A DNA stretch of 60,563 nucleotides, filler included, from Platydemus manokwari (taxonomy: Eukaryota), in NCBI GenBank assembly GCA_037951405.1. It is 5 parts of 5 records of this genome, joined end to end, with 100 filler letters (N's around TTAATTAATTAA, not from the genome) between each part and the next. Parts side by side here need not be neighbours in the genome. Positions count along the whole stretch, not along the records: positions 1 to 14,027 come from JBBMOY011550300.1; 4 more parts are not named here. The stretch is one strand, 5' to 3'. The translations under genes and the position numbers were made by a program. The notes beneath the pieces were generated by a model. The model was not told the origin of the DNA. It did not search any database and worked only from the letters and a program-made list of their open reading frames with translations. Shown in pieces: positions 1 through 12,576 of the stretch (position 1 is its first letter; each line of letters opens with the position of its first letter).

Positions 1-212
1 TTATTAATTAAAACTTATTTTGCGCATTATTTTTTTTAAATCAAATTATAATTCCTTAACGAGTTAAATTTACTTATTCTCGTTGACAATTTGAAACATG
101 TTTACGTCTTGTTTTAATAACAAATATTTGACCTTACTAGTTATGGAAATTATTCAATAATTTTTAAGATGATTTACTCTTCATATCAAATTAATCTTAT
201 TTTTTATTTTAG

Positions 213-526
213 CATGGACATTTAGAATTAATAATTCTAGTACTTTCTATTGTATTTAAAGGCAGTGAAAGTTGTTTTCCATTGCAATATTCAAAAAAAT
301 TTTGTTAGAAAAGAAATTTTGTCATTCATATTTATAATTTTTATTAAATTTTATGAAATTATAATTTATTACCAATAAGAATGGGATTTAATTAAATAAA
401 AATGTTTTAGGCATTGAAAGAAACGGTATAGCTCCCAAAAGGTTTTTCTTTAAGTTTTCGGTGCCAACAAGAAATTGTCACGCTTGCTGTTCCGAAAGAT
501 GCCGTTTTGATATTTATTGTGCATAA
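213..526 (+). CDS. Small secreted cysteine-rich peptide, copy 1 (5' partial; start exon probably upstream of the window)
   Basis: Exons 213-303 (after ttttAG) and 411-526, with a phase-1 GT-AG intron at 304-410. Translation: HGHLELIILVLSIVFKGSESCFPLQYSKKFCIERNGIAPKRFFFKFSVPTRNCHACCSERCRFDIYCA*. Hydrophobic signal-like segment plus 7 Cys. Same exon phases and last-exon length (116 nt) as the paralog at 2446-3052. Confidence 0.8.
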
Positions 527-2445
527 AATAAATGTAATTGTGTTTGATTTTTCATTGATTGGGTTGGATTACTACATGTTTATGAATTGTATAAAGAATA
601 TATTATTAATATTACAATTAATTATATAAAAAAAGCAATTTCATCGGGGACCGCGTTTGTTTGAATTTCGGTTTTTATTTCGTTCTATTTTATGACAACC
701 ATATTGGTCAGAAAGATTGGTATCTTGTCACATTTACTCGTCACCAGTATATTTTTGAGCATCTTGATTATAAGGGGTATAAGATCCTTGATTTTTAAAA
801 TCAGAATCAATAAATTGTAAATAATTAAAAATTATTCTTTTGACCCAAATATATTTGTAAGAATGCAGCAATATATATCATGATTTCATGGAACCTATAT
901 TATGCTAGCAAACCAATAGTGATTGGGTATTGCCAGGGTTTAAAAGTCAAGAAATTCAATTAGTCAGTGGTTTAAGTTCAAATTATAAAAGAAATGTTAA
1001 AACGATTAATTATTTAAAAGAAACTATACTGTAAATATGACTGATAGTTTATCCTAAATATCTGAATTATTTTCAGTAATTAAGGCGTAGTTCAACTTTC
1101 AAGTAGAAAATTAAATATATAAATAATCTCGATAAATAAATAATGAAACAAATTTTATAACAAAGTAAAAATAACGATAAAATAATAATATTAATCGGTT
1201 TCTATAATTATCTGGGGTTTATGGATTTCGAGCATGTCACATAAAATGACAAAACACAATCTATGTAGTTGGCAGAAATGATGCTGCTAATTAAAGAAAG
1301 ATTGATTTTAAAAGAGTCACAAAAGAGCCAAAAAACGTTAACACAGGCCTGGGAAATATGATATCACATAAACACAATTTACTTGAATGCCTAATGAAGT
1401 TGATTTGAAATAACAAATCAAATGTTCTGGAATGTATTGAATGCAAAGGAATAAAACGGCTGGGCCTAATGTGTCAAAAGTAAATGTAAATATTCAAATT
1501 TTAGCTTTAATCTTGAAATTTACGAGTTAAATGATGCATGAATTACTTATTTTAAAATTGATACAAAAATGTGAACTTTGTTCTCTGCCAGTCTTTTGAC
1601 AATGAATGGTATACCTATGAGTACCATAGGAAATAAATACGATGAAATTCTTTTTTCAATAAAAGTAATTAAAAGATTCAGGTTCTTTAAATCTTAATAT
1701 TCGTTTTAGAAACCAGTTCTTGAAAGACATTATTGTTTCTAACTTCTTGAAAGATGGTGCTTGTAATAACATGCTTGAGGTTTATTTTTGTATTCAAATT
1801 ATCAGCGAGATAAATAGAAGAGTTTGAGTTAGTATTGAATAACGAATAGAAATGTAATTATTTAGTGTTATTAATATGGATTTTTTGATAAATATAATGA
1901 AATTTTTGTCATCATTTGTGTTTCACTTTTAAATTTTATAAATAAATTCGAAATACAGATAAATAATAATAATAATAATTTTCTGATATTGAAGGATATT
2001 GTAATAATTCGCTTGAGTTATCAAATATTTTTTATAACCAAATCATTATCAAAGAATCTTGTTCAATTTATTTAAATACACCATCTGTTCTATTTGTTGG
2101 CAATAAGCTTTTGATTAAATAATTACAGTGATTATCGTAACCAGTAACAATATTATGTTGAACTAATATTCCAGAATCCATTTGTAAGTAAAGTACCAAT
2201 GATTACATTTTTCACTTCAATAAACAGCACGATTCTATTTTAAATTCGATAATTTAGACTTAAGTAACAAATACCAAGAAACTTTTGGGAAAGGTTTTAA
2301 AAAGTTCAATTAAGCAATAATAATTATTATTTCTTCTTTAAAAAGTACATCATAGAGTACAAATTCTAAATAAGTAAGATTCAAATTAATATATGTGATA
2401 ATTTACCTTTTTTTTACATAATTTACATTTAATTTGTGATCATTT

Positions 2446-3052
2446 ATGGTAAAAATTATACGATGGAATTTTATCTTTTTTATTACCGTACATTTGGATA
2501 CATTTATCAAATTTAAATATTATAATGCATTTGAAATTGATTCAGTACTAATTTTACAAAAATATCGATTTTGAAAATTTCAGTATTTGTAAATGATTTG
2601 TTTTAATATCTTAAGTGAATTAAAATGTTTTTCGTTATTTTTTTGAATTTCGTAATATAAAAGCATGTAATTATATTAAGATTTACTTAATTTAAATCAT
2701 TTTTTAAGTTTGAAAAATTTGAAAAAAAACTTATTTTAGAAAATAAGCCTATATTTAATTGCTCTATTATTTTGCACTATATTAATTAGAAAGAACAAAA
2801 GCTGTCAATCGGAAATTTATCCACAACAATTCTGTTAGATTTTTATTTTGAAATTCCATTTTAGTAATCTTTCTGTAAAATTATTTACAAAATAATCTTT
2901 TATTTTAATCAATTGATTTTTATTTCTGATATTTAGGCATCGACAGAAATGGTATAGCGCCAAACATGTATTTTTTTGAATTTCGTTTACCATTTTATAA
3001 TTGTTATGCCTGTTGTTCACGACAATGTCGATTTAATATTTATTGTTTATAA
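2446..3052 (+). CDS. Small secreted cysteine-rich peptide, copy 2 (~70 aa)
   Basis: Exons 2740-2833 and 2937-3052 (GT-AG, phase 1); putative ATG|GTAAAA start exon at 2446-2448 is less certain. Translation: MKISLYLIALLFCTILIRKNKSCQSEIYPQQFCIDRNGIAPNMYFFEFRLPFYNCYACCSRQCRFNIYCL*. 27/48 residues identical to copy 1 from the first conserved Cys, with no indels. Confidence 0.8.
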
Positions 3053-3135
3053 GTTTGTAAGTTGTGAGAAATAAACCGTTTTGAAAATTACATCCAGTTA
3101 GAATTTATCGATATATATTTTACTGTTTATATCTT

Positions 3136-3420
3136 TTAACACATTGATGGACAATAGGAACAAATGAAGTTCGAAATTTAATACTATGTGTGTATTTAAG
3201 CTGAAAGTCGTGTATTAGGTGGAAAACAAAAATCAACCGAAAGAATTGTTTCCAAAACATGACACTAGTCTTCTATTTGTACGCCGGTAAATGCACATTT
3301 GTGCCGCTATAGCCGCATCGTCCATAAAAGACCGTTTCGTTTTAGACGGCTATTGCCGTCATGCCACATAGTGAACTTCGCTTTGACGGTTATAGACGCA
3401 AGTTTCCGTCAACGTGTTAA
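3136..3420. mobile_element. Non-autonomous piggyBac-type element (MITE) flanked by TTAA
   Basis: TTAA at 3136-3139 and 3417-3420. Imperfect TIRs CACATTGATGGA (3140-3151) vs reverse complement CACGTTGACGGA (3405-3416), 10/12 match, both mismatches CpG-type transitions. Interior more GC-rich than flanks. Confidence 0.55.
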
Positions 3421-3930
3421 AAGATTTTTAAAAATGATTTGAAAAGATTTTAGTACTAAGATAAATTACTTTCGGGACACCTTTTTGATTTTAATAGCGA
3501 TGCTTTCAGAGATCTAAAACTAGAAGAGAATTTTCTAACAAACAATGATTGAAGAAAGATTTAATTTTTAACACATTACTGTAAGTGGAAATACCAACAG
3601 TTTATGGTGTATTTCTCAGGTTAAAATGAACACAATGAAGCAATTTAGCCAATTAATATATCATACGTGGGTACGATTATCGTGCTGATGTGCACAGTGA
3701 GAAATTGATACTTTATATGATAGGAAAAAATACCAGTTTTCAATCTGATAAATCCAGGCTACAAAACGAAAAGTAGACTAGTTTCTTTGTGATGTTCTCA
3801 TCCACAATAATATATTTCTGTTCCTGAAAAAATGTTCAATCTGAATTTAAAAGTAATTATAATAATGTCAACGTGATGCGTGGTGTTCTTAGTTGGTGGA
3901 ATAACTTCCAGATCTTACTAGATGAAGAAA

Positions 3931-4473
3931 TATTGGGTATATCACAAATCAATCAAAAGGGTCACAAGAACCAAGGGAAGAACCCTAAAAAGGGTCAATA
4001 CACACAGACGTGATAAACACACGTGCCATTAACCAATCAGATTCGTTCTAAAGTTAATACATATTTAGAAGCTAATAATCGACAAGCACATACCTACCAA
4101 TGGTAGCAAGCTGAAATATCTGCCAATGGGAAATCAGATATAAGGAAAATCTCAAGTAAATCTATTCATGAATAAATCCAGCAAATGTAAAACTAAGATA
4201 CCGTGACATCAAGCAGATACCCGATAGGACTATAAAAGAGGTTGAGTACCATGGATTGCTGCCAGTCTTTTTTGGTCGGTAACTTCAGTGCTTAGCTTAT
4301 GTGTGATTTGATTACTTTCCATTCTGTTTTTGACTTTCGAATGATGATCCCACATTGAATGATTTTCTTTGTGAATTGCGTAGAGATTTGTTGTTGTTAT
4401 TATCGAGACTTTGAATGTATTATTTTAGTTAATATAAATTTTCAGATTTAAATTGTTGTTTGATAACGCAGCT
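3931..4473 (+). mobile_element. Interspersed repeat, solo-LTR-like, copy 1
   Basis: ~540 bp colinear similarity to 53713-54258 (shared AATCAATCAAAAGGGTCACAA, GTCAATACACACAGAC, TTTTAGTTAATATAAATTTTCA). Internal TATA-like CTATAAAAG; degenerate TG...CA-like ends. Confidence 0.6.
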
Positions 4474-4699
4474 AAAGGTTCTTGACAACAATTTCCAATA
4501 GATAATTAATTAAACAAAAATTTTTGTCAATTACTGAGATTTCAAATTTTAGTCCTGAACACAGTATAAGCAGTAATCTAATAATCATAATCTAACCGAA
4601 TAATTACATTCCTATTTATGACTTTTCACAATTTTTATTGTTTCAAATAAAATCGTTTCGTTATTTAAAAATTCTATAAATCAAAGTATGCGGCATGTT

Positions 4700-5300
4700 G
4701 TTCAGAAAGGTGATATAAAATCCTGGTGGATGAAAGTCAATGGATCTTTAGAAAACCAGTTAAATTTAAATTGGAATTGAATTGTTTTCCTAAAAAAAGT
4801 TGTCAAGTCGTAGTGATCGGTTGGGCGAGTTCTGGCGAGTATGGAGAATGATTTAGAAGTTTCAACTCCAATTTTAAGTTTTGCCATAGTCATTTGTGCT
4901 TGTATGGTCTGTGGAGCATTTTAGGCAGTTTTTCTTTAAGTTTTTGCATCATTTCATCCAGTTGGTTGCAGTATATTTATGTTGTGATCGATGACTCATA
5001 TTTCAAAAAATTATAATAGATCATACCTGCAATACATCATCAAATACTCACTATCAACTCTTTTTGATAAATATTATGTTTTGAAGTGTGTTTATTATCC
5101 AACCATAGTGCTGTATGTTTTTGATTATCAGCATAAATTTATCTGATAAATTTCTCATCACAAGTGACAATTCGATTTGAGACTATATGGCAACATCAAG
5201 CATGGTTCCAATTGCTTTTGTTTCTGCTTCTCATTCATTTCGTGTAGAATCCTCTTGCAAAACTTTTTCACTCTACCGATTTAAGCTTGATAACACCTAA
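4700..5300 (-). mobile_element. Degenerate mariner transposase fragment
   Basis: Minus-strand motifs RIVTCDEK (~5152-5175), IYCNQLDEMMQKLKEK and HSPYSPELA (~4824-4850) match the mariner signatures IVTCDEKW and HPPYSPDLAP. Interrupted by stops and frameshifts. Confidence 0.8.
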
Positions 5301-8300
5301 CTTCAAAGATAATTCGTAGGGATTCTGAGGTGATTCAGATTCGAAGGTTACCTATATTTTATTATTAACCTTTCATTCTAAGCGACCACGTGGCTCACTT
5401 GGTGTCAAAATTACTTGCACAAAGTTTGGCGAACCAATTCGATACTGTCTTCTGCTTAGTAAAATATGAGTCAAACACGCTATTGATGTTTCATGTGGTT
5501 TGTGATGATGCAGTAGCTCATAAGTGCTAATTTCTGATTGTTCAATTTTCAACTAAATTAACTTTTAAAACAGGCAAAAAAATAGAAAAAAAGATAAAAT
5601 ATTAAGCCAAAATCATATTAAGGTGTTAATGTTGATAATTTTCTAGTATATAATTTTTTAAAGATAATTAATAAAAACTTAAAAAATTTTCTTGAAATTA
5701 TAATACTTGTTTGATTACTGTGTACCAATTGATTTGCAGACAATCGCAATTATTTTGCCTTGAGTAAATTAATTCAACTGTGTGTGGCAAAGCAAACGCA
5801 TATTTTCTCTCCCCAATGTTGTGCGAATTCATTTTAGTGAACAGAAACGCTTGATGTTAAGCCTTCTTTGTTATTTAGGAAATGAATTGGAAAATGGTGA
5901 GAGTTCGTATCCAATATAAGCAAATTAATGTATAATTAATAAGTGTGCTTCGTGATTGATTTTCTTAAATTCATAAAGTGAACAGAAATATTCCAATGAA
6001 GATTCTTCTACGGGATAACTTATAATCACTTCCTTTGGTTATAGTGTAGGAAAAATTTCGATTTAACCTGGTTCGAAGTATTTTTGTTAACACAAATAGT
6101 GAGTTTTATTGTCTCTTGACTCAACTCGGCAGAAACAAATCGAGTAAAAAAATTAATTTGTATTTTCCAAAAATTATCACCTTAAAATTAAAGAATAACA
6201 GATTATCATTATTCAGAGATTTAACAAACACCTCGTTATTGTGTCAAAAATAGTCTGAGAGAACATAGGAGGTAAAACTGGTGAATAGTTTCCCTTAAAA
6301 TTACGCCTTTCAATTAGAATGTATAAGGAATAAATAGGTAGTATTTATTGCGATTATCTGTAGTGATTGATAACGGTTCTTGGTGATAATCATTGCAGCA
6401 GTTCTCTCAATTTGTTACAATTATTATTATCTACTTAGACACTCACCTATTTTCTACACACGCAAACACCCTTTCATTCAATATATGGATATATTAACAC
6501 AAAATTAAAATATGTTCCTAAGTTTCAAGTGTTCCAACAGTTTTCTTAATTTTCCTGAAAATTTTACTTCAAAACACAAATTACTACCCACTCCACGATT
6601 ACCTTTTACTATTATAATACTTTTAAAATCAATAAAATTCGAAGGTCGTAATTGATAATTTTTATGGTTCCTGTCACTAAAAATCAATCTTTTGATTGTA
6701 CAGTAAATGTTACTAAAACTTTTCCTTATATTTTCCTCATCTAACAAGACTTGATTCTTGCTCGTTGGGTTTGTGTTGTTGGAAAGTTATTGTCACTCAA
6801 CAGCGTGAGTTATGAATGTATTATTTGTTATTACCATTTATTTATTCTTCCAAACAAAATACACTAATTGGTTTATTAAAAAATTATTGAATTAAAATTT
6901 TCACACAACAATCACGCGTTTAGCTGCTTGTTTAGATCACAAGTACTATATTTTAATTTGTTGAAATTAAAAAAATAGATTTCCATTTTATATTTTAATT
7001 GATATCCAAAAGGGCAAATTCTTTAGGAACTTCATTGATTTACTCAAAGAATAACCATTACTAAAGCTTAAATCGGTAAAGTATTCTTCGTAATTAATTA
7101 AGCTTTATATTTGTTCGATAACTTACTCGAAACAATGAGTTTATGATTTATAACTTTATGACTAGACAACTCCAAATTAAATTTTTAACTTTTGTTTTCG
7201 TCGATTTTCATGTCAGTTTAAATAGTTATCTGATTTGGACTTTGATCCAATAATTAATAGAATTTTTATTAGATTTTGATTAATTTCTGGTACCTTGTAT
7301 CATTAATCATATTATTTTTCTCTTCACTTTTTAATATTTACATTATTTTCGTACTACTTTGTACCATAACCTGATTTAATTGCTTTTATCGATTTTATTA
7401 TTATTGAATATTTGAATATTAACCTATCAAAGTTCTTAAGGAACATTTGACTTCTTTTTAAATTACTGCTCCTTTGAATTTCCTATCCTCCAGAGTTGGA
7501 AGGCATTAGTTCCCAACTTTGGTTGTTTCACATTTTCATGGTATAATAGCGTTAGACAAAAAATTTATGACATCACACATTTGCAATAGCATTTGCAGTT
7601 AATATCGTCTTATTATAAATAAATTTTATTGGCTCAAGTTTTTGTCATGTATTCAAATTTATCTAATGCAAACACGCAACCTAAGCTTCGACACTTCTAA
7701 GAATTGGATATTGATGAAATTCGCGATATCTCAAACCCAGAAAACTTTAAAAATAGAAATATCATCAAATTCCATCACTATTCATATGCAAATTTAGTGG
7801 AGAATCATCGTGTTATCTCAGCTAACACTAGAACAACGGTATGATATCTAATAAATTGGGATAAAATTTTAGATCTTTTTAATATAAATTATCTAAGTAT
7901 GTGACAGAATGAAATCTCATTATTTAAGAGAATATGAAATACTTGAAAGATAGTTTCATCGTTTTTGAATAATTTAATGGATATTTTTCTGAAAGATTTA
8001 TAAATGCTGGTGCCCATATTGAATATAAAATTATACTACCATACCACTGCGTTATAAATTTTAATATATTGTCAATATTTTAAATTTTATTAAGATAATA
8101 ACTTATAATAATTTTAAAACAGGGAGTTATTTTTCAATGACCTTGTAAATTAATTATTAACTAGTTATTGATAAATACCTTAATGGATATACTGGGCAAG
8201 AAAATTGTTAACAATAATGATTACAGAGTCTCTGTGTAAAAAGAATGGCAATTCACAGAATCCAAGTTAAAGATGGATGATAGATTTAATTAATAAATGA

Positions 8301-10365
8301 TAGAAAATTCAGGATCGTCTAAATCGATGTAAAGTGTCCGATGGACGAACCTGTTTTAATGGTCCAAACTGTTCAAAATAATGTAGAGAAATACTCAGAC
8401 CTCCGAAATGCGATAAAAAGCGGTCAGACTAGAATTTTCACTTTTGTTATAGGGGTTCTAGGGACTTGGCAGACACATATAAACGACAGTGTCATAAATT
8501 AACGAGGGATGGATAAGAAAATGATAAATAAAATAGTTCTTGCATGAATAAAGTCGAATACAAATGCGGGTTATCTGCAAAAGAAGTTCTACGCGGAAAG
8601 ACAACAGCAAAAAGGCAGTTTTAAAAAAGAGGAATTGGATATCCCAGACAATATCGATTGTAAGACAGAGACATAATTGATTTAAACGTTGAATTGATTG
8701 TATGCTTGACCTAACGAACTGTGGTTGTTGAAACTATAGGAGGAAAGAACCATGTACAGAACATATTTCAATGGATGAGTATTTCAATTATCGATGTTTA
8801 TGAATAAATATTTATAATAGTTAAATCACTCAAGACAGAATAATACGATCAATATTTAACACATATTGTCAAAAAAGAGGGCATTAATTAATTTCATAAA
8901 TAATATATACATTTCAATTTACATACAATGATATCGAAAGGACATTTGAATACAATTAGTTAAATATATCCTGAGATATATATTGTGGTACAGCTAGTTT
9001 GTGAATTCATTTAACTGAGGTGTGCAAATGTGCTTTTTGTTCTTATTATCCATATCATTTATCAATTTAAAAATCCGAATATACTTTTCAGAGTTTTTAA
9101 AAGATTTTATAAGCTACAAACATAAAATCCAATCAAATTACTACACATTATCCTCTATGTAAATTATAGAATTTTGAATTTTTTTATGTTATTTTGACGA
9201 ATGGTACTTGAAGCGAATTTTTGCATACTATATATAAAATTAAATTTGAGATGTTAGTTAAAAGTCGTGCTAAAGGTCAATGAAATTATCGATAGTCGCA
9301 GGTCATTATCATTACTGATCTGCTTAATAATAATAAGCCAAATAAATAGTTTTGGTAAAATTTTATTTGAATACTAGTTAAGATAGAAGACTTTTATGCA
9401 ATTTCAAAAACCCAATCTATTGGAACTTATGAAGAACGCAAGCCAATGTTACCAGTCATCTTTGATGTATAAATAGATTCTTAAGCTATCGTAAGAAACA
9501 CTAAACATGTTCAGATAAATATCGGATTTTCAGATGAAATCAAAATTAAGTGAATGAGTGAACAATTAAAAAGTGTACAAAGTTGAAGGAAGTAATTGTT
9601 TATTCGGTGAATATATGGCGAAACCAATGGCAAGAGATAATGAAGAAATGCGGTATCATTTTGTATTGAACTTTCTATTTGCAAAATGCTCAATAAATTG
9701 AGAAACAATGAAGTATCAATTATATGGAAAATATTTTTACAATGGAACATAATTTTCTGAATCAAATACAGCAAATAAAGTTACGTTTATTAGAAAACTG
9801 GTTAAAAATCAAGAAAAAGTAGGTTAATGATGTTTTTGAATTTCAAATGAAAATAATAATATTTAATTTATTAAATTTAAAAACATTCGCGTATTGGAAA
9901 TTTACTTTTCGTTACAACTAACTCAATATAAAAAAAATAATTTAACTTGAAATTTAAGTAAACAATTCTATTTAATATTCGTATAAAATTGACCAAGTGA
10001 AAAATATTAAAAGAAAATTTAAATGCTGAACAATTTTTTATAAAAATAAAATCCCCCAAATGTTCAGGACTTTTGCAATCCAATACATAATAATATGTAA
10101 ATCGATTACTGTCATAATAATAATTCATTAATAGTTTTATTGTCAAAAATATGTAGTCAATTATTACAATTACGATAAAACATTTTAGTTTAATAAAATT
10201 GTACAAACTGGCCTAATTTAAAGTGATATCATATATCAATTGTTTCTTTATTTATCTACTAAATTTTGTTTTAAATCTATTTAGCAGCCTGTTTATTGAA
10301 CTAGTTTGTACTTAACTTTAGAAATTTTTTCTCAACGATGATACATAATAAATTATCATCTATAG

Positions 10366-10488
10366 TAGAGGTGGCCAACTTTTGTGTACGTAAGATCGAC
10401 TTTTCATTTGAATAACATCTCACGCAATCGACTAAAATTGGCTTCAAGATCGACCAGTCGATCGCGATCGATCGGTTGGCCACCCCTG
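10366..10488. mobile_element. hAT-type MITE (123 bp)
   Basis: 14-bp TIRs TAGAGGTGGCCAAC (10366-10379) and GTTGGCCACCCCTG (10475-10488), i.e. CAGGGGTGGCCAAC consensus. 8-bp flanks ATCTATAG and ATATACAG (6/8 match). Repeated internal GATCGAC motifs. Confidence 0.75.
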
Positions 10489-10861
10489 ATATACAGCATA
10501 TCTTTACTATTTTATAATTTTAACAAATTTTGTCATATCAAATATGGTTACTGAGAAACTAAAGAAATTAAAAATATTTGAATATTGTTTCGTTACTGAT
10601 TTAATATGCACTGAAATTTAGAATTATTAGTTTACTAGGAAATTATTTAACGTGATTAATTTAAGTAGACTAAACCTAAAAATCTAGCAATTTTTTGATT
10701 GCTTGTTTATTTAATATTTATATTTGCCCTTGAAAGCAAATATTTCAAATTCAAAATTATTTACGTTATTATTTAACCATGTCATTCTACTTTTACCTCG
10801 CTTTCATAGAGCTTTTCTTATATAACTTGTAAACTTAAATTAAAGTTATTACGTTTTAGAT

Positions 10862-12511
10862 ATGCTGACACCAAATTCACCGTTGATGCAAACATTGCTT
10901 GGAACATTTTTTACTTGGGGTATGACGGCTTTAGGTGCTCTTGGTTGTCTGATGCATTATTCTAGAATCGAAAGTGTAATATATAATTTTACATTACTAT
11001 TAAGTTTGCAAGGGTTTTATAGTTGAAAATTATTGATTGGTTAACTTTCAAGTTTTATTGAAAATCAAATTTGCAATATTAAAAATATAAATCATTTGAA
11101 TATTTTGCTTTTTCTAGAGGAAGCTGCTTGATGCTAGTCTTGGATTTTCTGCAGGAGTTCGAATGAATTTATGTACTATTTCTTATTAACATAATTTAAA
11201 GGTTATGTTAGCTGCTTCATACTGGTCATTATTATCCCCAGCAGAAGAAATGGCTAACAGTGTTGGTTATGGTAATTTCAGCTTTATTCCTCTCGCAGTT
11301 GGTCTGCTGATGGGATCGTATTTTGTTTTTCTTGCTGATAAATATGCACCAGTGGGTTCATTCTCTGATTTCACCTCAATTCATACGTCACTTGACGATC
11401 GTATATCACTAGACAAAAACGATATATCATACAACAAAACGATGAGTTCAGGTAAACGTTATCTTTATTGTCACCTTGGAAAGATGTCAATAAATAATAG
11501 TTACTCATTTTCAAATAAATTAAACGATAATCTTATTCCTATTAGATATGGAGCTCAAACAGCGTAAAAGTACAGAAATAAATCATAAAGTCAGCACAGA
11601 ATCAGTTACAAATAAAAATACTAATGTTAGCCGTCGATTACTTTTAATGATGATAGCAATCACGATACACAACATTCCTGAAGGATTAGCAGTTGGAGTG
11701 GCTTTCGGAGCTGTGGGTAAGGGCAAAACAGCGACTATATCTAATGCTAGGTATACCATGGATTACTATAACACTATCATTTATTATTACTGAACTTTGT
11801 TAATCAATAGTTGATTATTCAGGAACCTCGCACTCGGAATTGGAATCCAAAACTTTCCTGAGGGTTTAGCAGTTAGCTTACCTTTAAAAGCCGCAGGGAT
11901 GTCTCTCAGCCGAAGCATTTGGTTGATACAGTATTAATTTTACAGATAATTAATTATTTCTAGGTACGGTCAACTGTCTGGTCTTGTAGAACCAATTTCC
12001 GGGATTATAGGATGTTTGGCTGTTCAGCTAATCAGTCCTATTCTTCCCTATGCGCTTTCATTCGCTGCTGGTGCCATGATATACGTGGTTTTCGATGATA
12101 TTATTCCTGAATCTCAACATATGTAAGCATTTCTGCTATTTGTTAACGTCATAAAATTAATGTGAAACATTGAATTGATCTAATCTCTGTGATTGACACA
12201 CACATAAACACAAGCACCAATTATCGAATAACTAATACAGTATGCAAAAAATCGCATGACTCATTTTGCACAAAACATCGAGACATACATTTGCCAGCAA
12301 GGACAAAAAGCACAATTTCACACCTCTGTTAAATGAATTCACAAACTAGCTATACCGCAATATATATCTCAGGATTGATATTTAACTGATTGTATTTAAA
12401 TGTTTCGTGATTAATTTTTAATTATATTTTAGGGGCAATGGCCAACTCGCGGCAATATCTGCAATTTTTGGATTTGTTTTGATGATGTGCTTGGACATAG
12501 GGCTTGGTTGA
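10862..12511 (+). CDS. SLC39A11: Zinc transporter ZIP11 (GufA subfamily), 7 exons
   Basis: Exons 10862-10975, 11118-11156, 11202-11451, 11546-11750, 11823-11921, 11964-12122, 12433-12511; all GT-AG and in frame. Motifs [92 protein letters not shown]. Confidence 0.95.
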
Positions 12512-12576
12512 TCTCTGTGGATCAAAATAGCTTCAGTGATCTAGATATATTGTTTTATGTCAAATAGAGATCGTTT

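Follow-up and report, generated by a model that had tools for sequence, protein, structure and literature searches.

Gene callers routinely overlook small genes that encode secreted cysteine-rich peptides and are split by introns, although many bioactive molecules come from such genes, among them defence peptides, ligands, and probes of receptors and channels. The inhibitor cystine knot (ICK) class follows a six-cysteine consensus, C-x3-7-C-x3-6-C-x0-5-C-x1-4-C-x4-13-C, and its disulfides connect I-IV, II-V, and III-VI to give a threaded ring; the insulin signature consists of CC-x3-C-x8-C in the A chain and C-x11-C in the B chain; and in the cysteine-stabilized alpha-beta (CS-alpha-beta) defensins a C-x3-C on a helix is paired with a C-x-C on a strand. 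Here, we describe two paralogous split genes in the genome of the flatworm Platydemus manokwari (GenBank assembly GCA_037951405.1). The window, i.e., the whole stretch of DNA that was analysed, comprises 60,563 nucleotides (nt), filler included, and joins five parts of this genome; both genes lie in the first part (positions 1 to 14,027, record JBBMOY011550300.1; referred to below as the piece). We consider it reasonably likely that they are anciently duplicated, functional genes of an undescribed, lineage-restricted family, whose products we infer to be secreted cysteine-rich peptides.

Two reported systems are of particular relevance to this pair. According to the portions of the mussel report used here, the MgCRP-I precursors have a pre-pro region that is conserved and a mature peptide that is hypervariable, and conotoxin-like families behave likewise (PMC4558851). 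The second concerns the start of translation: in the sections of the reports on which we draw, the flatworm spliced leaders (SLs) reported so far all end in AUG, which is usable as an initiator (PMC12582326, PMC9851317, and PMC7346339, citing Cheng et al. 2006).

Structure of the two genes

The two genes lie on the plus strand, 2.5 kb apart (Table 1), gene 1 being located at one edge of the piece. A preliminary description of this DNA had proposed two spliced paralogues at about this distance, with equal exon phases and with the codon of the second cysteine (Cys2) split T|GC, and our splice models reproduce that arrangement. In both copies the intron interrupts the Cys2 codon in this way and opens with the same donor hexamer, GTTAGA, and the joined exons form open reading frames (ORFs) of 207 nt (gene 1) and 210 nt (gene 2). 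The piece is AT-rich, with a G+C content (GC) of 0.20-0.35; the GC of the exons ranges from 0.24 to 0.38, the highest value being that of gene 1 exon B (0.38), versus 0.14-0.155 in the introns. The exons were searched singly in databases and were joined only for translation, composition, and the ratio of nonsynonymous to synonymous substitution rates (dN/dS).

The stop codon stands at an equivalent position in both genes, one residue past the last cysteine. Because this position is common to the two copies and an AATAAA poly(A) signal lies close 3' of it in each, these are terminal exons of compact genes, as opposed to a domain inside some larger protein. We also weighed a reading in which the hydrophobic segment stays uncleaved as a membrane anchor, or in which the exons belong to a larger protein and the cysteine domain is its small ectodomain or C-terminal domain. 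Neither gene has a defined 5' end, a basic RKNK follows the hydrophobic stretch in gene 2, and there would be eight cysteines per precursor if those in the candidate first exon of gene 1 (see below) and in the hydrophobic segment of gene 2 are counted, all of which would suit such a protein. However, these additional cysteines occupy non-homologous positions, no conserved coding sequence was found further upstream (the identity of positions 40-97 is at background), and no notable open frames occur between genes 1 and 2. The 2.5-kb spacing, with a stop and a poly(A) signal belonging to each copy, points instead to two compact genes, and we regard the anchor or larger protein as very improbable.

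Table 1. Coordinates of the two peptide genes and of their candidate upstream exons (positions along the window)
Feature	Position	Strand	Description
Gene 1 candidate cis-spliced first coding exon	98..139	+	ATG + 13 codons, phase-0 donor GTTATG; speculative
Gene 1 exon A	213..303	+	Hydrophobic signal-like segment, Cys1, variable 9-residue loop, first base of Cys2 codon
Gene 1 intron	304..410	+	107 nt, GTTAGA...TTTTAG, phase 1, GC 0.14
Gene 1 exon B	411..526	+	Rest of Cys2, RNGIAP, aromatic stretch, five cysteines, TAA at 524-526
Gene 1 AATAAA poly(A) signal	527..532	+	Directly 3' of stop
Gene 2 candidate cis-spliced first coding exon	2625..2651	+	ATG 2625, phase-0 donors after 2633 (GTTATT) or 2651 (GTAATA); speculative
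Gene 2 exon A	2740..2833	+	Hydrophobic signal-like segment, Cys1, variable loop, first base of Cys2
Gene 2 intron	2834..2936	+	103 nt, GTTAGA...ATTTAG, phase 1, GC 0.155
Gene 2 exon B	2937..3052	+	Conserved core, five cysteines, TAA at 3050-3052
Gene 2 AATAAA poly(A) signal	3070..3075	+	Within 20 nt of stop

Paralogy and selection

From Cys1 to the end, the two products are identical at 27/48 positions (56%), with neither an indel nor a stop, exactly as had been claimed, and they share 20 of the 41 non-cysteine residues. A tblastn search of the window with exon B of gene 1 returned that exon itself (E 1e-36) and exon B of gene 2 (E 2.6e-16). No third copy was found in the window by this search, and the C-terminal cysteine pattern was not encountered elsewhere in six frames. 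Identity is unevenly distributed along the precursors, amounting to 6/21 in the signal region, 2/9 in the first inter-cysteine loop, 12/21 in the middle segment, and 11/16 in the last segment.

Within exon B, identities at the three codon positions are 27/37, 29/37, and 19/37, the third position being the most diverged. The Nei-Gojobori method gave proportions of synonymous and nonsynonymous differences (pS and pN) of 0.71, which is saturated, and 0.27 (Fisher p 7.8e-5), and a dN/dS of ~0.15 that is a rough figure owing to the saturated dS. Ungapped nucleotide identity reaches 0.69 in exon B, versus 0.32 in the downstream flank and 0.32 +/- 0.05 in the window background. The introns, which had been described as diverged, are so in part; ungapped identity is still 54% across their 5' halves, and they differ little in length (107 and 103 nt). 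Judged from these comparisons, the duplication is old, with neutral sequence already randomised. Since the frame, the cysteines, the splice sites, the stop, and the poly(A) signal survive despite this randomisation, we attribute their retention to purifying selection on real coding sequence. The comparison thus indicates that the two are real coding genes and not chance ORFs, in line with the earlier claim of functional coding sequence.

The contrary view is that these are non-working genes, either decaying relics of a gene pair or coincidental open frames, for which a start codon is not needed. It would accommodate the absence of an in-frame ATG from exon A of either gene, the position of gene 1 at the edge of the piece, and the lack of a protein match in the word-index and 1.84-billion-representative searches reported below. 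Against it, 48 codons have stayed free of stops and indels despite saturated silent sites, with pN well under pS (p 8e-5), and neither copy has lost any of the seven cysteines, its splice sites, the position of the stop, or the poly(A) signal. Chance similarity is excluded by the tblastn result (E 2.6e-16), and we give the relic explanation very little credence.

Features of the encoded peptides

The framework C-x9-C-x21-C-x2-CC-x3-C-x5-C-x1-stop is identical in the two copies and places seven cysteines in 48 residues. Both copies likewise keep RNGIAP and the aromatic stretch, so that the 48-residue invariant framework and the conserved motifs of the preliminary description were all recovered. 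The hydrophobic N-terminal segment that it had mentioned is also present, with Kyte-Doolittle means over 11 residues of 2.98 (gene 1) and 3.19 (gene 2), i.e., ~3 in both, and with hydrophobic cores of 12-15 residues; in gene 1, small residues occupy positions -1 and -3 of the predicted cleavage site. A generic secreted cysteine-rich precursor is characterized by a short mature domain in which the cysteines do not vary and which stops where the gene truly ends; both copies show this, and these features suggest that the products are small, probably secreted, disulfide-rich peptides. Net charge is not kept between the copies, being +5.8 in copy 1 (isoelectric point, pI, 9.2) versus +0.7 in copy 2, and this difference weakens a simple cationic antimicrobial reading.

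Homology and fold searches

The preliminary description could assign the peptides to no named family, and database searches led to the same outcome. Pfam, queried with the four exon peptides at E values up to 10, returned nothing relevant, the one sub-threshold chance match being to a Bacillus sporulation family. Nothing relevant was found among PDB sequences, either with each exon-B peptide (phmmer) or with a two-sequence profile, and a word index of 5.8 billion proteins yielded no candidate for exon B of either gene. A HMMER profile searched exhaustively against 1.84 billion protein representatives gave 0 matches at E <= 0.001; the profile has 37 positions, so that only fairly close relatives are able to pass. 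In a Joint Genome Institute (JGI) metagenome scan, 489 stretches matched the pattern and none was confirmed. A literature search with short motif strings returned only chance hexapeptide matches in papers on rotavirus VP6 epitopes.

In both AlphaFold models of exon B, strands of a beta type are predicted in three places (residues 11-16, 20-26, and 32-36, approximately) and no helix is seen. The two underlying alignments consist of the same two sequences with their order swapped, and the models are therefore not independent. Foldseek comparison of the exon-B model with the PDB gave a best E value of 1.8, to unrelated large proteins, which is meaningless.

The cysteine signatures given above were also tried on the pair. 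ICK spacing failed, as loops of 21 and 2 residues and seven cysteines are present and loops 1 and 2 cannot be fitted whichever six cysteines are taken; similarity to a known knottin member failed as well, with no relevant match in Pfam, PDB sequences, or Foldseek. The insulin/relaxin signature failed on the spacing of CC-x3-C-x5-C and C-x9-C. As for the CS-alpha-beta defensins, C-x3-C is present, C-x-C is absent, and the models are without a helix.

The preliminary description had gone further and likened the pair to knottin-type toxins or antimicrobial peptides, which would serve in predation or defence and evolve as venom or antimicrobial families do. The products are indeed small, cysteine-rich, aromatic-rich, tandem, and lineage-restricted, the strongly cationic copy 1 (+5.8, pI 9.2) and the predicted small beta-sheet would fit the class, and the C-terminal CC-x3-C-x5-C recalls the second half of cystine-knot frameworks. 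However, no toxin, knottin, or antimicrobial model or structure was matched, the loops of 21 and 2 residues and the seventh cysteine fall outside cystine-knot spacing, and copy 2 is near neutral (+0.7), leaving only one copy cationic. The mode of evolution also argues against it: with a dN/dS of ~0.15 and a mature region that is 56% identical versus 6/21 for the signal, the pair shows the reverse of the conotoxin-like and MgCRP-like pattern, as the latter is presented in the parts of the mussel report drawn on here (PMC4558851). The knottin, toxin, or antimicrobial label is thus not supported, being contradicted on both spacing and evolutionary pattern as far as these can be read from the DNA, and we regard this identity as unlikely.

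A further candidate is an endogenous signalling ligand, i.e., a hormone, a growth-factor-like peptide, or a distant insulin-superfamily-like peptide in which C-x9-C would be the B-like part and CC-x3-C-x5-C the A-like part. Purifying selection and a conserved core suggest a fixed binding partner, copy 1 carries a Lys-Arg pair between the two halves, and CC-[S]-x2-C is reminiscent of the A chain of insulin. On the other hand, the spacing is x9/x5 rather than x11/x8, there is an extra cysteine, and copy 2 is without a dibasic site. The Pfam Insulin model did not match either exon-B peptide at E values up to 10. In addition, the peptide motifs are absent from those supplement files of the planarian prohormone survey that were available, a source that is relevant only for Schmidtea. 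Taken together, these points make a signalling ligand rather improbable in our view, even more so than a toxin.

Translation start

No in-frame ATG is present in either exon A. Both of these exons are open in phase 0 right after a common acceptor 9-mer, TTATTTTAG, the TAG of which is an in-frame stop. This is the configuration associated with initiation at an SL AUG, namely, a first genomic coding exon that opens in frame at the 3' acceptor and lacks an ATG of its own. Rfam and tRNA scans of the window, SL RNA included, were empty.

Candidate cis-spliced first exons can also be drawn (Table 1). In gene 1, the ATG of 98-139 is the sole ATG within positions 1-212 with an in-frame phase-0 GT downstream, and the candidate ATGs of both genes lie exactly 115 nt upstream of exon A. 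In register, the segments 98-212 and 2625-2739 show 43% ungapped identity versus a background of 32%, which is near the 99th percentile. The donors of the candidate mini-exons are at non-homologous positions in the two genes. The start is either a tiny cis-spliced upstream exon or, in a flatworm genome, the AUG that ends a spliced leader, and both fit. One added Met would give a conventional-looking signal peptide in both copies.

Proposed products and function

According to the explanation we favour, that of two functional genes for secreted cysteine-rich peptides, each gene would encode a precursor of ~70 residues. Its Met would come from a tiny upstream exon or from the AUG of a flatworm trans-spliced leader joined at 212|213 and 2739|2740. 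The hydrophobic segment of exon A would act as a cleavable signal that leads the precursor into the secretory pathway, with probable cleavage immediately ahead of Cys1 (following ..SES in the gene 1 product and ..NKS in that of gene 2), and the released product would be a 48-residue, aromatic-rich peptide. Its conserved C-terminal two thirds may form a small three-stranded beta-sheet braced by disulfides. The seven cysteines would make three intrapeptide bonds, and the leftover thiol may be free or engaged in a covalent homodimer or heterodimer.

The function is the least certain part of the proposal. We suggest an extracellular binding peptide of an exocrine or epidermal secretion, which would act on a conserved partner and take no part in an arms race. 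A conserved partner is favoured because conservation is higher in the mature core than in the signal region and because dN/dS is low. A defence or mucus role seems somewhat more likely than hormone-like signalling, although the evidence does not separate the two.

Several observations weigh against the proposal. The Asn at position -3 in gene 2 is unfavourable for cleavage, compact secreted folds do not usually have an odd number of cysteines, and the initiator Met of both precursors is only predicted, none being present within exon A. The predicted beta-sheet comes from models of low confidence (mean predicted local distance difference test, pLDDT, scores of 63 and 68) that cover exon B only and hence five of the seven cysteines. 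As to expression, the empty result of the HMMER search counts against the pair; the dN/dS figure, with dS saturated, is itself rough. A bolder version of the proposal, in which the peptides represent a new disulfide-rich fold family, the genes have no start codon of their own so that translation begins at the spliced-leader AUG, and the seventh cysteine couples the neighbouring paralogues' products into a covalent heterodimer, appears improbable to us as a whole.

The cysteine framework and sequence of the pair are unmatched in very large collections of proteins and structures, and selection clearly maintains it; it thus constitutes a credible new family that is worth annotating and counting genome-wide. 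It also offers a clean test case for the start of translation, mini-exon versus spliced-leader AUG. The finding alone is modest, as lineage-specific peptide families are common in invertebrate genomes and no unusual mechanism is indicated yet.

Control gene and other features of the window

For comparison, we used another gene of the window (10862-12511, plus strand), which encodes a ZIP11-like (SLC39A11) zinc transporter. Its spliced model joins seven exons into an uninterrupted open frame of 314 amino acids, which matches an ant ZIP11-like protein at E 2e-50 (44% identity over 203 residues); this ant protein was the sole return of the ZIP11 exon search (55% identity), and one exon matches Pfam Zip under the family cutoff. 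Its introns measure 42-310 nt, with a GC of 0.19-0.30, and its donors are GTAATA, GTTCGA, GTAAAC, GTATAC, GTTGAT, and GTAAGC, two of the six beginning with GTT. Because these introns and donors are comparable with those of the peptide genes, the introns and GTT-type donors of the latter are ordinary for this genome. A TTTTAG acceptor-like site (window 10853-10864) lies 2 nt upstream of the ZIP11 start codon; a 5' untranslated region intron or a trans-splice acceptor would fit, and chance is possible in AT-rich DNA.

Inverted 77-nt copies at 8968-9044 and 12299-12375 are 92% complementary and probably represent a small dispersed repeat, the second copy sitting in intron 6, a long one, of the ZIP11-like gene. 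Positions 10354-10500 hold a short GC-rich element with imperfect 26-nt inverted repeats at its ends (core GGTGGCCAAC / GTTGGCCACC) and a GATC-rich palindrome inside (10453-10476); it has the look of a miniature inverted-repeat transposable element (MITE) and is without a tRNA or Rfam match. The open frames at 13852-14027 and 8323-8499, both on the plus strand, resemble by eye the C-terminal parts of ORF2 of a non-long-terminal-repeat (non-LTR) retrotransposon; the former is cut by the edge of the piece and has no Pfam match. The longest stop-free frame of the piece (12580-13041, minus strand, 154 codons) converges on the end of the ZIP11-like gene, enters a (TA)n tract, and has a sub-threshold Pfam match only (UBR1-like wing, E 0.026). 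Just 3' of gene 2, positions 3230-3400 are locally GC-richer, contain short internal direct repeats by eye, and may be a degraded mobile element.

Comparison with known systems

In opening in frame at the acceptor without an ATG, exon A of both genes resembles flatworm mRNAs that are initiated at an SL AUG. The present pair differs from these in that it is known from genomic sequence alone, where a cis-spliced mini-exon accounts equally for the facts.

With insulin and relaxin, the peptides share two N-terminal cysteines, a C-terminal CC-x3-C...C block, a motif of the CCS type, and a precursor that is short and has a signal segment (predicted in the present case). They differ in the x9 and x5 spacings, as opposed to x11 and x8, in an extra cysteine before the CC pair, in the lack of conserved dibasic sites, and in the prediction of beta-strands rather than helices.

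The knottins, including those of spiders and cone snails (ICK) and the nemertean alpha-nemertides, are alike in having small secreted precursors with a signal segment, tandem paralogues, and an adjacent CC followed by C-x3-C in the C-terminal half, although for the present pair the secretion, the signal, and a small beta-sheet are predicted. A cystine-knot-like factor, TCEN49, is known from planarians. In contrast, the P. manokwari framework has seven cysteines and not six, with loops of 21 and 2 residues, and matches no knottin in sequence or fold; its mature region, under purifying selection, is better conserved than the signal region.

The mussel MgCRP-I genes, as characterized in the consulted parts of their report (PMC4558851), also form a taxonomically restricted small family with an intron-split precursor and invariant cysteines, and genes of this type are likewise overlooked by standard ORF or gene calling. 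The conservation pattern is reversed in P. manokwari, and the cysteine framework is different from that given there. Collectively, the pair is a new family, while the kind of gene to which it belongs is familiar.

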